This document shows positions 1,336 to 44,511 of a stretch of DNA of 64,000 bases, piece after piece. The notes under the pieces were generated by a model, which made no database searches, was not told the origin of the DNA, and saw only the letters and a program-made list of their open reading frames with translations. Numbering within the stretch: the stretch's first letter is position 1; each line of letters begins with the position of its first letter. The stretch is from positions 24,800,001-24,864,000 of the forward strand of contig NC_043010.1 of the NCBI RefSeq assembly GCF_006345805.1. The letters are read 5' to 3'. The stretch comes from Octopus sinensis. Its lineage: Eukaryota. A program made the translations under genes and the position numbers.

Positions 1336-4300
1336 CAAATGGAGAAAAGGTTGGCTGTTCAAAAGTCCCTGCAATCAAGATTTCAGATAGACCGGACAAA
1401 ACTAATCTAATCAACGTAACGGTGACGGTGCCAAGAAGGGATTCTGCAGCCATGGAATGCTATGCCAATGAAGCCTTTGTAAACATTAGTGGTGTTGGCG
1501 ACTTCTGTGATAGTCACTGTCGACTTGGAAAATGTCCTCGTAAATGGTGTGTATGTAACAGAACAGAAGACAAGGGACAAGATTTCAAATGTGTGGTCAA
1601 TAAGTATTATGAGAATATCGATGATCTCTTGACCTGGTGCTATGCACTTTGCGCTACAACACAGTATTGTCCGACACAGTATTGCATTTGCAGTGGCACA
1701 CCACGTGAAATAGCAAATACAGATTTCATGGGACCTGAAGAATTAAAAGAAATTACTTGCAGATTGACTAAGGGTTACGAAGGGATTCCAGGATTGTTAA
1801 AATGGTGCTATCGTTTGTGCAAAGGGCGATATTGTCCACGGACACATTGTATATGCAGTGTCGTTTCAGATACAACACCGGTACCAAAGCCCATACTAAG
1901 ATGTTCAGTGACGAATCGTTACAAACGGCTCCCAGGTGTTTTGAGTTGGTGCTATGTAATATGTGAAAGAGGATACTGCCCAAAATCTTTTTGCATTTGC
2001 ACAAAATCTATCACCCCTCCTCCGACCACACCCAAAATGGAATTGAGTTGTAAAGTGAATAGAAAATTTGGTGCAATACGAGGAATGATGTACTGGTGTT
2101 TAAACAATTGTCCATTGGGTAACTGTCCGAAATCACACTGCGAATGCGCAATGGTCAGAGTCACATCACCAACAACAACTCCAACAACCACACAAACAAC
2201 AAGATTAAGGAGGAGACGAACGATAATAATAAGGAGAAGAATAACGCGCATAATAAGAATAACATTCATAAGAACCCAGCCAGCAAGAGTAGGGACAACA
2301 ATACAACCAAGAACAACGCGAATTATTCGAAGAACAAGGATAATCACACGAATAATAACAATCATTATCAGAAGAACAATACTGCTAAAACGAACAACAC
2401 CTGCATTTACAAGAAATACGACAAAAACAGCAAATGCAACAGCAAGAAGCACGTTGAACAACAGGACAACGACAACGGCAAACACAACAGTGTCGCTAAC
2501 TGTAACAACACAGAATATAACAGCAACAACAGGAGTAACAATACAAAATCAAACTACTACAACACAAACAGCAAACAGAACCATAAAAATAACAACAAAA
2601 CCAACAACCATACCAACAACTAAACCCTCGACAGTACCAACAACCACACCAACAACCACACCAACAACAACACCAACAACACCAACAACAACACCAAAAA
2701 ACACACCAAAAGGACCAACAACCACACCCACTACAACATCAACAAGAACACCTAAAACAACACCAACAACCACACACAGAACAACGCCAACAACAACACC
2801 GACAACAACACAAACAACAACACCAACAACCACACCTACAACCACACCAACAACCACACAAACAACCACACCTACAAACACACCAACAACAACACATACA
2901 ACCACGCCTACAACAACAACAACAACAACACCTACAATCACACTTACAACAACAGCAACACCAAAAACAACACCAACAACCACACAAACAACAACGGCTA
3001 CAACAAAAGCATCAACAACACCTACAACAACACTAACAACAACACCAACAACTACACCAACAACAACACCTAAAACCACACCAACAACGGCACCAACAAC
3101 AACACCTACAACGACACCAACAACAAAACCTACAACCACTCCAACCACCACACCATCAACCGCACCTACAACGACACCAACATCAGCAACCACAACCACA
3201 CCAACAACACCTACAACAACACAAACAACCACACCAACAACAACACCAACAACAATACCAACAACCACCCCAACAAAAACACCAACAACCACACCATCAA
3301 TCACACCAACAACAACACCTACAACTACACCAAGAACAACACCGACAACAAAACCAACAACAACACCAACAACAACACCTAAAACTACACCAACAACAAC
3401 ACCAACAACAACATCAAAAACGACAACAACAACAACACCAACAACAACGCCAACAACAACACCAACAACAACACCTACAACTACACCAAAAACCACACCA
3501 ACAACAACACCTACAACTACACCAACAACAACACCAACAACAACTCCAACAACAACATCAAAAACGACAACAACAACAACACCAACAACAACACCTACAA
3601 CTACACCAAAAACCACACTAACAACAACACCTACAACTGCGCCAACAACAACACCAACAACAACACCAACAACAACACCAACGACAACACCTACAACCAC
3701 TCAATCAACAACACCAACACCATCACCAACGACAGCACCTACAACCTCACCAACAACCACACACTCAACAACACCAACGACGACACCAACAACCACACTC
3801 TCAACAACACCAACGACGACACCAACAACAACACCAACAACAACAACTGCAAAAACACAGACAGAAACACCTACAACCACCCCTGCAATCTCACCAACCT
3901 CCGCACTTATAACCACACCAACAACCACACCTACAACCTCACCAACAACTAAACCTACAACCACAACAACAACACCAACAACAACACCAACAACAACACC
4001 AACAACAACACCTACAACAAAACCTACAACCACACCAAAAACGACACCTACAACCACAACAACAACACCAACAACAACACCAACAGCAACACCAACAACA
4101 TCACTTACAACAACAGCTACAACCTCACCAACAACCACACCTACAACCTCAGCCACAACTACACCTACAACCACACAAACAACAACACCAACAACAACAC
4201 CTGCAACCACACCAACAACAACACCTACAACCAGACCTACATCCACACCAACAACACCTACAACCACACCAACAACCACACCTACAACTACACCTACAAC

Positions 4301-7300
4301 CACACCTACAACCACCCCAACAATCACACATACAACCACGCCAACATCCACACCAACAACCACACCAACAACAACACCTACAACTACAGCAACAACTTCA
4401 ACAACAACCACATCAACAACCACACCAACAACAACACCAACAGCAACACCTACAACCACACTTACAACCCCACCAACAACCAATATTCCAAGCACACCAA
4501 CAACAACACCTGCAACCACACCAAGAACAACATCTACAACAACACCAACAGCAACACCTACAACCACACCTGCAACCACACCAACAACCACACCAACAAC
4601 AACGCCAACAACTACACCAACAACAACACCAACTATCACACCTACATCCACACCTACAATCACACCAACAACGACACCTACAACCACACCAACAACAACA
4701 CCAAAAACAACACCGACAACTACACCAACAACAACACCTACAACCACACCAACAACCACATCAACAACAATACCAACAACCACACCAACAACAACACCCA
4801 AAACCACACCTACAACCACACCAACAACCACACCTACAACAAAACCAACAGCAACACCTACAACCACTCCTACAACCTCACCAACAACCACACCTACAAC
4901 CTCCCTAACAACCACACCAACAACAACACCTACAACCACTCCAACAACAACACCAACTACCACACCAACAACCACACCTACAACAACAACAACAACAACA
5001 CCCACAACAACACCAACAACCACACCAACAAAAACACCTACAACCACTCCAACCACCACACCAACTACTACACCAACAACAACACCCACAACCACACCTA
5101 CAATCACACCAACAACCACACCTACAACCTCCCTAACAACCACACCAACAACAACACCTACAACCACTCCAACCACCACAAAAACTACTACACCAACAAC
5201 CACACCTACATCCACACCAACAACAACACCTACAACCACACCTACAACCTCACCAACAACCACACCAACAACAACACCTACAACCACTCCAACCACCATA
5301 CCAACTACTACACCAACAACCACACCAACATCCACACCAACAACAACACCTACAACCAAACCTACAACCTCCCTAACAACCACACCAACAACAACACCTA
5401 CAACCACTCCAACAACCACACCAACTACTACACCAACACCCACACCTACATCCACACCAACAACACCTACAACCACACCAAGAACAACACCTACAACCAC
5501 ACCAACATCCACACCAACAACAACACCTACAACCACACCTACAACACACCCAACAACCACACCTACAACAACACAAACATCCACACCAACAACAACACTT
5601 ACAACCACACCTACGAACTCTCCAACCACCACACCAACAACATCTAAAACCACACCAACTACTACACCAACAACCACACCTACATCCACACCAACAACAC
5701 ACCTACAACCTCAGCCACAACTACACCTACAACCACACAACAACAACAACAACAACACCTACAACCACACCAACAACCACACCAACTACTACACCAACAA
5801 CCACACCAACATCCACACCAACAACAACACTACAACCACTCCAACAACAACACCAACAACCACACCAACAACAACAACACCTACAACCACTCCAACAACC
5901 ACACCAACAACACACCAACTACTACACCAACACCCACACCTACATCCACACCAACAACACCTACAACCACACCAAGAACAACACCTACAACCACACCAAC
6001 ATCCACACCAACAACAACACGTACAACCACACCTACAACCACACCAACAACCACACCTACAACAACACAAACATCCACACCAACAACAACACTTACAACC
6101 ACACCTACGAACTCTCCAACCACCACACCAACAACATCTAAAACCACACCAACTACTACACCAACAACCACACCTACATCCACACTAACAACACCTACAA
6201 CGACACAAACAACTACACCTACCACAACACTTACGACCACACCTACAACCACACCAACAACCACACCTACAAGCACACCAACAACAGCACCAGCATCAAC
6301 ACCTACAACCACGCCAACAACCACTCCAACATCCACACCCACAACAACACCTACAACAACACCTTCGACCACACCAACAACAAAACCAACAACCTCACCA
6401 ACAACGACACCTACAACAACAACTACAACCTCACCAACAAGCACACTTACAATCTCAGCCACAACCACACCTACAACCACACCAACAACCACGCCCACAA
6501 CCACACCAACAACAACACCTGCAACCACAACAACAACAACACCTACAACCAGACCTACAACCACCCCAACAACCACCACCTACAACCACACCAACATCCA
6601 CACCAACAACCACACCAACAACAACACCTACAACTACAGCAACAACCACACCAACAACCACATCAACAACAACACCAACAACAACACCAACAACAACACC
6701 TACAACCACACTTACAACCCCACCAACAACCACATCTTCAACCTCACCAACAAACACACCACCAACCACACCTACAACCACACCAACAACAACACCAACA
6801 ACAACACCATCAACAACACCAACTATCACACCTACAACCACACCCACACCACACCAACAACAACAACACCAACAACAACACCAACAACAACACCTACAAC
6901 CACCCTACAACCTCCCTCACAAACACACAAACAACGACACCTACAGCCACTCCAACCACCACACCAACTACTACACCAACAACCACACCAACCACTACAC
7001 CAACAACCACACCTACATCAACACAAACAACCACCACTTCAACTACACCTACAACCACACCTACAACCACACCAACAACCACACCTACAACCAGACCAAC
7101 ATCCACACCAACAACAAGACCTACAACAACACCCACAACCACACCTACAACCACACCAACAACCACACCTACAACAAAACCAACAGCAACACCTACAACC
7201 ACTCCTACAACCTCACCAACAACCACACCTACAACCTCCCTAACAACCACACCAACAACAACACCTACAACCACTCCAACAACAACACCAACTACCACAC

Positions 7301-43952: not shown

Positions 43953-43972
43953 GGCATCTTATTCTATGTCAG

Positions 43973-44511
43973 ACAAAGTGTCACCCGTCGTTCCCTTTGT
44001 ACCCACAAATGGCAGCGACTATCCACTTGCTATGCACTATGCACATTATCCAATGCATCATATTCCTTATGCACCTTATATGAGTAACTACATGTGGTGT
44101 GGAGGTCACGGATGGTACTCCCACGTCCCTGGAATCCAACACTGGTGCGGAAGCAACTGTTTGGGTGGTTACTGTCCGGGGACCCACTGCGCATGTAACG
44201 GACATTGCAACGTTCACACAGGTTACAACTATGTTCCGGGTATGAATTACTGGTGTCATAACAACTGCCATTGGGGCTACTGTCCAGGGAGTCACTGCAA
44301 TTGCTTGTACCATCTCAAGATGCCGTCATCTGATGAGCAACCAAAAGCACCAGAAGGGCCGTCTCTTGGAGATTCATCAACCGCAGAAACAGGAGATTCA
44401 GATTTGAACAAAGACAGCGATCTCTTCAAAGGATGGTTCGATCAACGAAAAGCTCAACAAGACAAACTTAAACGCCAACGTCTTTATATTATCCAGATGT
44501 ATTTTAAATAA
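43973..44511 (+). CDS. Gene 2 terminal exon: His/Tyr/Pro/Met-rich linker, two Cys6 modules, acidic/charged tail
   Basis: Acceptor ttattctatgtcag|ac (phase 1, compatible with exon 2); CGGHGWYSHVPGIQHWCGSNCLGGYCPGTHCAC and CNVHTGYNYVPGMNYWCHNNCHWGYCPGSHCNC; stop at 44509-44511. Confidence 0.8.

Follow-up and report, generated by a model that had tools for sequence, protein, structure and literature searches.

To our knowledge, AA15 is the sole family of lytic polysaccharide monooxygenases (LPMOs) in animals, and in every LPMO known to us the N-terminal histidine provides two of the three copper ligands. Insect group I members of AA15 are required for cuticle turnover. We analyzed a 64,000-nt stretch of Octopus sinensis DNA (CM016872.1:24,800,001-24,864,000; hereafter the window) that carries two co-oriented genes related to these enzymes: gene 1, whose last large exon occupies 1336..19092 on the plus strand, and gene 2, which extends from 26105 to 44511 on the same strand. 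Window positions 16105-48162, with the run of N, are identical to a 32,058-base stretch of chromosome CM016872.1 in assembly GCA_006345805.1. With a probability of about 0.6, both genes encode secreted proteins of an octopod gene cluster that derives from a group-I-type AA15 LPMO, in which the AA15 core is dead and putative chitin-binding six-cysteine (Cys6) modules were kept or multiplied. The two products are probably secreted, non-enzymatic matrix proteins associated with chitin.

In the insect group I enzyme LPMO15-1, two tandem repeats of the form C-X15-C-X3-C-X6-9-C-X4-C-X1-C follow the AA15 domain; they were described as unrelated to CBM14, and their binding was not assayed there (PMC9156745, PMC12955341). 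Group I AA15 LPMOs share with gene 2 a signal peptide, an AA15-type beta-sandwich, a linker of Ser/Thr/Pro type and two tandem Cys6 modules. The sizes are also similar, with 335 residues in the gene 2 orthologue of Argonauta hians (P0001), 338 in Biomphalaria XP_055868679 and 333-343 in insect LPMO15-1 (e.g. TcLPMO15-1). The N-terminal domain of the octopod proteins (N-domain) is homologous to residues 65-162 of TdAA15A (PDB 5MSZ). However, the octopod proteins lack His1, have His91 replaced and have lost the GNSWG…CGCG loop, and the spacing from Cys3 to Cys4 is 4-5 residues in their modules (4 in gene 2) compared with 6-9 in insect LPMO15-1. Gene 2 further adds a C-terminal helix, whereas gene 1 has five modules and a giant mucin domain.

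The modules were located by a six-frame scan of the window with a degenerate regular expression. The pattern C-X15-C-X3-C-X4/5-C-P-X3-C-X-C occurred in a sensible frame at exactly seven sites, all on the plus strand. Five of these form one continuous frame (1458-2147), and the other two lie in another frame (44098-44304). The scan and a module alignment placed modules 1 to 5 of gene 1 at 1458..1556, 1590..1691 (with five residues between Cys3 and Cys4), 1758..1856, 1902..2000 and 2049..2147, and modules 6 and 7 of gene 2 at 44098..44196 and 44206..44304, separated by 3 residues. All seven have an aromatic residue at +6 after Cys1, W or F preceding Cys2 and Pro after Cys4. Gly at +11 is present in six, module 2 having Asp, and Tyr precedes Cys4 in five, the exceptions being module 1 (Lys) and module 5 (Asn). 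An earlier note on this DNA, made from the sequence alone, had described seven modules shared by two co-oriented genes, and both this arrangement and its counts for the +6 aromatic (7/7), W/F (7/7), Gly (6/7) and Tyr (5/7) were reproduced. The remaining matches to the regular expression were rejected as artefacts, as they are runs of Cys, Trp, Gly and Arg that arise when the A/C-rich mucin array of gene 1 is translated antisense. Searches of the 44.5-64 kb part of the window by tblastn with other paralogues and by the degenerate scan found no additional module or paralogue.

A 33-position profile was then built from the seven window modules and six others, taken from the Argonauta orthologues and the database protein P0004, and this module-only profile was searched against 1.84 billion representative proteins, with 226 matches at E<=1e-3, of which 39 reached E<=1e-10. 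Because it scores homologues down to E 1e-122 in a set of this size, the resemblance among the modules is, by sequence score, not due to chance. AA15 hallmark motifs, either 'HG.L..PP.R' behind a signal peptide or 'GCG.QE.F..C.D[IV]', were present in at least 54 of the best 151 matches, and in each case they preceded the modules. About 12 of the same 151 have the end of a GH18 domain at their start or further inside, e.g. 'WALDLDDF'. In a Pfam scan of 142 matches, 22 reached LPMO_10 and 3 reached Glyco_hydro_18. The AA15- and GH18-linked modules were retrieved at E 1e-26 to 1e-5.

The matches named 'chitin-binding type-4 domain' came from gastropods (Biomphalaria, Haliotis, Patella, Littorina, Pomacea), from bivalves (Pinctada, Mercenaria, Potamilus, Ylistrum) and, beyond molluscs, from the annelid Paralvinella, the tick Hyalomma and the mite Dinothrombium; the copepod match consists of modules only. 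The earlier note had pointed to a six-Cys motif behind some animal AA15 LPMOs; it matches the insect LPMO15-1 repeats (PMC9156745, PMC12955341), and AA15 proteins from molluscs, one annelid, one tick and one mite are likewise among the matches to the module profile. In the GH18 chitinases (e.g. P0020, P0033, P0150), 1-3 copies of the same module follow the catalytic domain at the C-terminus, so the module is shared and the catalytic partner differs; no GH18 domain was found in the window. P0006, a metagenome-derived protein of 1459 residues in ENA, has 21 Cys6 modules and no Pfam domain, and P0084, P0086 and P0106 (2084-2301 residues), which also have no Pfam domain, each carry two Cys6 modules at the extreme C-terminus. 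By these sequence matches the range of the module is broader than AA15, as it also includes GH18 chitinases, multi-module proteins and one mucin. On this distribution, the module is a strong candidate carbohydrate-binding module of an undescribed kind.

The Cys6 modules would be the working parts of the octopod proteins, attaching them to chitin, since the same module sits on two unrelated chitin-active enzymes, AA15 and GH18. A different explanation is that they are disulfide-knot cross-linking, protein-protein or metal-binding units, and that the proteins belong to ordinary mucus of skin, gut or oviduct, for which the AA15 ancestry would be historical only. Many of the module matches have no recognisable enzyme domain, among them the 1459-residue protein with 21 modules and mucin-like proteins rich in Ser/Thr, and gel-forming mucins are generally known to bear Cys-rich cross-linking domains. 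The structural comparison also leaves room for this explanation. No Pfam family, CBM_14 included, matched the module-bearing sequences even at E<=10, and the PDB held no sequence match to the module profile. The AlphaFold model of the two-module segment of gene 2 (32-row alignment) had a predicted local distance difference test score (pLDDT) of 75, with a strand-helix-helix-strand arrangement in each module, and a Foldseek search of this moderately confident model against the PDB gave no match. A relation to hevein, CBM14 or tachycitin was therefore not detectable at that sensitivity, and no known carbohydrate-binding fold was found. However, the module recurs C-terminal to AA15 and GH18, which are unrelated chitin-active domains, in molluscs, annelids and arthropods, and repeated attachment of this kind is what one usually sees for modules that target a substrate. 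The conserved aromatics of exposed type (Y/F at +6, W before Cys2, Y/F before Cys4) would also be typical of sugar-binding faces. On balance, we consider the cross-linking explanation unlikely.

To trace the N-domain, we used a profile of three octopod sequences, namely gene 2, P0001 and the Argonauta orthologue of gene 1 (P0005). Its sole match in the PDB was 5MSZ, the Thermobia domestica AA15 protein TdAA15A (E 2.8e-7), and the match covers chain residues 65-162. P0001 was modelled with AlphaFold from a 40-row alignment; the model had pLDDT >90 over residues 60-150, and its only Foldseek match at E<=1e-3 was again 5MSZ (E 1.9e-4, probability 1.00, 115 columns); an AA10 LPMO and CopC appeared lower in the list among generic Ig-like sandwiches. 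On its sequence and predicted structure, the N-domain is an AA15-derived fold trimmed to the beta-sandwich core, which agrees with the earlier proposal of an AA15-derived locus. The similarity is distant: octopod N-domains score 14-39 bits against canonical AA15 proteins, compared with 170-220 bits for canonical AA15 proteins among themselves across phyla, and the single-sequence score for Pfam LPMO_10 is 14.2 bits, below the cut-off of 23.

Alignment with canonical AA15 proteins showed what has been removed. The octopod N-domains open at the Cys of 'CGxCGDP', and about the first 60 residues, including His1, are gone. After its signal peptide, gene 2 reads 'NALITFQSPDKDLCN', without His as the first mature residue, and the mature N-termini in general read 'ALITFQ…', 'ILITYK…' and similar. 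P0001, P0005, the Argonauta paralogue P0013 and the O. sinensis paralogue P0024 all lack the 'HG…PP.RS' motif, which is present in all canonical relatives of the same alignment. In both HMMER and MAFFT alignments, the column of TdAA15A His91 (motif T-A-x-H) is occupied by Asp in gene 2 and P0001 and by Thr in P0005, and the 'GNSWG…CxGCG' loop is deleted. Tyr24 and Trp168 (Y24, W168), the substrate-face aromatics named for TdAA15A, would by residue numbers fall in the deleted stretches. The last strand is kept as 'REYVKC' or 'KEYVKC' in the gene 2 orthologues, compared with 'QEEFYGC', and its Cys is nearly invariant; the axial 'QExF/Y..C' stretch falls within an assembly gap for gene 2 and reads 'GEKVGC' in gene 1. 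Having lost His1, the second brace histidine and the GNSWG loop, the N-domain is almost certainly non-catalytic and not a copper enzyme. The non-catalytic LPMO fold suggested by the earlier note is thus borne out by sequence, with no N-terminal His and with Asp or Thr in the second-histidine column.

We also considered whether gene 2 might encode a copper LPMO that is still active through an unusual metal site, such as one that involves a His beside the lost brace position. Gene 2 and its Argonauta orthologue do have a His one residue past the His91 column ('DPDH'), and a Tyr is found at the axial 'QExF/Y' position in the gene 2 orthologues. However, the 'DPDH' histidine is not conserved in the paralogues, with Thr/Arg in P0005 and none in P0013 or P0024, and the N-terminal histidine was lost along with the stretch around it. 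The presumed loss of Y24 and W168 and the low LPMO_10 score speak against activity as well, and we regard this possibility as extremely improbable.

Gene 2 consists of three exons, all on the plus strand. Exon 1 (26105..26236) encodes the signal peptide plus 'ALITFQSPDKDLCN' and is followed by the donor GTAAGT at 26237. Exon 2 (37740..38028), with its acceptor AG at 37738-37739 and its donor GTAAGT at 38029, encodes the trimmed AA15 beta-sandwich core (…DDPDHTTAEVYIC…WNCTNCVVQWILRQ) and ends in phase 1. The sequenced part of exon 3 (43953..44511) encodes a His/Tyr-rich linker (43987-44097), the two modules, an acidic spacer and a conserved C-terminal helix (~44419-44508), followed by the stop codon at 44509-44511. 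The linker and modules together contain 11% His and 11% Tyr, and it is to this part that the label His/Tyr-rich, given to the smaller protein before, applies. With a signal peptide, an AA15 remnant and two tandem repeats, gene 2 has the architecture of group I LPMO15-1. The C-terminal helix of about 30 residues (…FKGWFDQRKAQQDKLKRQRLYIIQMYFK) was modelled with pLDDT 70-80, and canonical group I AA15 proteins have no such helix.

An assembly gap at 43853..43952 hides the acceptor and about 50 coding bases of exon 3. This was recognized by comparison with P0002, a relative encoded on a related octopod contig (DNA segment L001). Bases 126-1092 of L001 are collinear with window positions 43953-44920 at 87% nucleotide identity, and its bases 76-125 (50 coding bases) and the preceding acceptor have no counterpart in the window. 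P0001 and P0002 both have about 17 extra residues before 'ASYSMSDK', where the window sequence resumes after the gap. The hidden stretch of about 17 codons, which reads 'DATEKYPTSKEYVKCYP' in P0002, also holds what is left of the AA15 'QExF/Y..C' strand. To the left of the gap, the sequence did not match L001 and looks intronic. Since the right flank matches L001 in frame and the left flank does not, the gap, as judged by this alignment, conceals the start of the last exon, with a coding, in-frame right flank and an intron on the left. The missing exon piece was not found elsewhere in the 64-kb window. An acceptor-like 'cag' at 43970-43972, which would join exon 2 in frame, was rejected as a decoy, as the orthologues place the exon start upstream, inside the gap. 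The public model LOC118765915 (P0003, 184 residues; 26105-38162) is mis-modelled: its junction of exons 1 and 2 is correct, but it passes over the exon 2 donor and continues into intron sequence ('…ILRQGKYSQMRS…'), presumably as the following acceptor is concealed by the gap.

Apart from the gap, the splice sites and reading frame of gene 2 are intact. Comparison of exon 3 with L001 gave a nonsynonymous divergence (dN) of 0.044, a synonymous divergence (dS) of 0.33 and a dN/dS of 0.13. By these values gene 2 is under purifying selection.

Gene 1 is truncated at its 5' end by the window edge. The large exon opens at 1336, after an acceptor AG at 1334-1335 that lies behind a polypyrimidine tract, and this border agrees with that of Argonauta P0005 ('...LIRQ/SSGNIIGC' versus '/(A)NGEKVGC' in gene 1, with the slash marking the border). 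The bounds given to the locus beforehand were accurate, as the start at 1336 is the first base past a good acceptor and the end at 44511 is the final base of the gene 2 stop codon. The exon encodes the remnant of the last AA15 strand, the five Cys6 modules, a mucin array and a basic tail, and the O. sinensis gene call of 1242 residues terminates at its end, 19092. Module 5 runs in frame to an Arg/Ile/Thr-rich linker and then to PTTT repeats. Tandem Repeats Finder placed the array at 2591..17330 on the plus strand, with about 1235 copies of the 12-nt unit AACAACCACACC that codes (PTTT)n. Spanning about 14.7 kb, it is a long Pro/Thr tandem-repeat domain as expected of a mucin, and the giant mucin that the earlier note had read here is real. 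The basic, Arg/Cys-rich C-terminal tail (18595..19092, +) has about 165 residues and continues the frame of the final part of the array. No other frame is open there in either species, and the tail is weakly conserved in Argonauta, where a similar tail has matching Cys positions (BLASTP E 1e-5). A minus-strand or other-frame reading of 18600-19090 was rejected because of stops in both species.

When window positions 1-1335 were searched by tblastn with the N-domain of Argonauta gene 1, no N-domain exon was found, so the 5' part of gene 1 lies outside the window. Word-indexed homologue searches returned octopod relatives only and did not recover the gene 1 N-domain in Octopus. In Argonauta, P0005 has a signal peptide, and its N-domain can be aligned with gene 2 exon 2 (31% identity, E 2.5e-11). 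From this protein we infer that gene 1 descends from the same dead-AA15 ancestor and that its N-domain lies upstream of the window. The earlier note had divided the locus into a giant mucin scaffold and a small protein with an LPMO fold; the giant mucin member stands, and gene 1 too appears to derive from a dead AA15.

As assembled, the array undergoes about 16 changes of its Thr/Pro frame in the interval 5669-13166 (net 0 -> 2 -> 1), and the module-bearing frame meets a stop at 6186-6188. The same local motif, CAACAACACACCAAC (a 2-nt CA gain), marks several of these switches in separate copies of a higher-order repeat, a pattern that is hard to obtain from random read errors and argues against errors that are purely random. 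The switches could be real, or they could be artefacts of repeat collapse. If they are real, gene 1 would be a decaying pseudogene in O. sinensis, and function would be left to gene 2 and the small paralogues. However, the module-bearing head of gene 1 is intact, its protein being 91% identical to P0004, and the orthologous reading frame in Argonauta runs for 7868 codons nearly without interruption. A 15-kb low-complexity array would also be a typical place for indel and collapse errors of long reads. Lacking T and G, the array is largely open in all three frames, which makes an open frame little informative either way. Taken together, these data make decay of gene 1 a rather improbable explanation.

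The two genes are part of a larger cluster. P0001, the gene 2 orthologue of Argonauta, is 67% identical to gene 2 across the whole query. On one strand, Argonauta has, in order, the P0005 head, a mucin call of 7868 residues, P0001, an uncalled paralogue and P0013, so the giant mucin lies directly upstream of the gene 2 orthologue. The uncalled paralogue, at L002 21029-22189 (BAAFZT010000032.1), has N-domain-like and module-coding exons and is located 5.7 kb past the gene 2 orthologue. A third O. sinensis paralogue, LOC115219204 (P0024, 270 residues), lies 82 kb downstream on the same strand and has the same three-exon structure. Strand and three-exon structure are common to the paralogues. The flanks, where the earlier note had advised looking for more paralogues, thus contain LOC115219204 in O. 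sinensis and more members in Argonauta, and the tandem pair of the earlier note has to be replaced by at least 3-4 clustered paralogues. Outside the octopods, the nemertean protein P0022 (Lineus longissimus XP_064622860) has a shortened AA15-like domain without His1, followed by three Cys6 modules. Compared with canonical AA15 domains, this domain shows no greater similarity to those of the octopods. The trimmed form is either old in Lophotrochozoa or arose twice. A literature search gave nothing relevant on both LOC genes, on cephalopod LPMOs or on AA15 proteins without the brace.

We propose the following route for the preferred reading, the descent of both genes from an AA15 LPMO. The ancestor was, by sequence and fold, a group-I-type AA15 LPMO composed of a signal peptide, an AA15 copper domain and two C-terminal Cys6 modules. 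Its AA15 domain has been cut back to the beta-sandwich core with loss of the copper-binding His1, the brace histidine and the loop, and the proteins would have stopped binding copper and cutting chitin. The modules have been retained in gene 2 (two) and multiplied in gene 1 (five). Gene 1 has acquired a mucin domain of roughly 5000 residues plus the basic tail, and gene 2 the His/Tyr-rich linker plus the C-terminal helix. The gene 1 product may then be a multivalent chitin-anchored mucin, whose five modules would cross-link chitin fibrils and whose O-glycosylated domain would form a hydrated brush. The gene 2 product may be a small bivalent chitin binder, in which the linker and the helix could serve cross-linking or assembly. 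Candidate sites for these proteins are the chitin-lined gut or sucker cuticle, the radula, the beak and the stylets.

Chitin binding and a structural role are plausible on the domain evidence, and the presence of the module on GH18 chitinases as well as AA15 proteins strengthens the chitin inference. Several points weigh against the proposal. Domain co-occurrence is the sole basis for chitin binding. The module has no Pfam model, no sequence relative in the PDB and no fold relative (for the model with pLDDT 75), so no known carbohydrate-binding fold backs the chitin inference, and many of its matches are module-only proteins or gene fragments. The signal peptide and N-domain of gene 1 are outside the window and were taken from Argonauta P0005, and with about 16 frame breaks in the assembled mucin, gene 1 could be decayed in O. 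sinensis. A wider proposal, which we put forward tentatively and at somewhat less than even odds, is that Cys6 is a protostome-wide chitin-binding module and a candidate for a new carbohydrate-binding module (CBM) family, and that octopods turned a dead AA15 into a chitin-organising matrix family, including a mucin of >5000 residues on five modules that would line or lubricate cuticular surfaces such as those of the gut or suckers.

The locus shows that one animal lineage has retained the LPMO fold without its copper site, giving a pseudo-enzyme family under purifying selection. The new element here is this pseudo-LPMO family with a mucin member; its module was already described, though uncharacterised. 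The fungal X325 proteins (Bim1/LaX325) are likewise LPMO-fold proteins that are no longer polysaccharide oxidases. In contrast to the octopod proteins, which lost the brace, X325 keeps the histidine brace and binds copper, and it belongs to another LPMO family and another kingdom. Gene 1 can be compared with peritrophin-type intestinal mucins of invertebrates, in which small Cys-rich, putative chitin-binding modules are also joined to a long Pro/Thr domain. Peritrophins use CBM14 (peritrophin-A), whereas none was detected in the octopod modules, so the likeness is one of analogy, not homology. Cephalopods may therefore possess a chitin-anchored mucin analogous to the arthropod peritrophin-mucins and built from different parts. 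The locus also supplies short, well-defined constructs for a direct chitin-binding test.

Besides the two genes with their A/C-skewed mucin DNA and GT-AG introns, the window contains microsatellites and both short and long interspersed nuclear elements (SINE-like and LINE). Two LINE copies lie in the introns of gene 2. One, at 29258-33740 (-), is near-complete, with a zinc-knuckle first open reading frame (ORF1), an AP-endonuclease, a reverse transcriptase and a zf-RVT domain; the other, at 40198-41924 (+), is a 5'-truncated reverse-transcriptase copy. SINE-like tandem pairs with a unit of about 166-183 nt were found at 27306-27734 and 49829-50154, and fragments related to this unit recur in the introns and intergenic DNA of the window.

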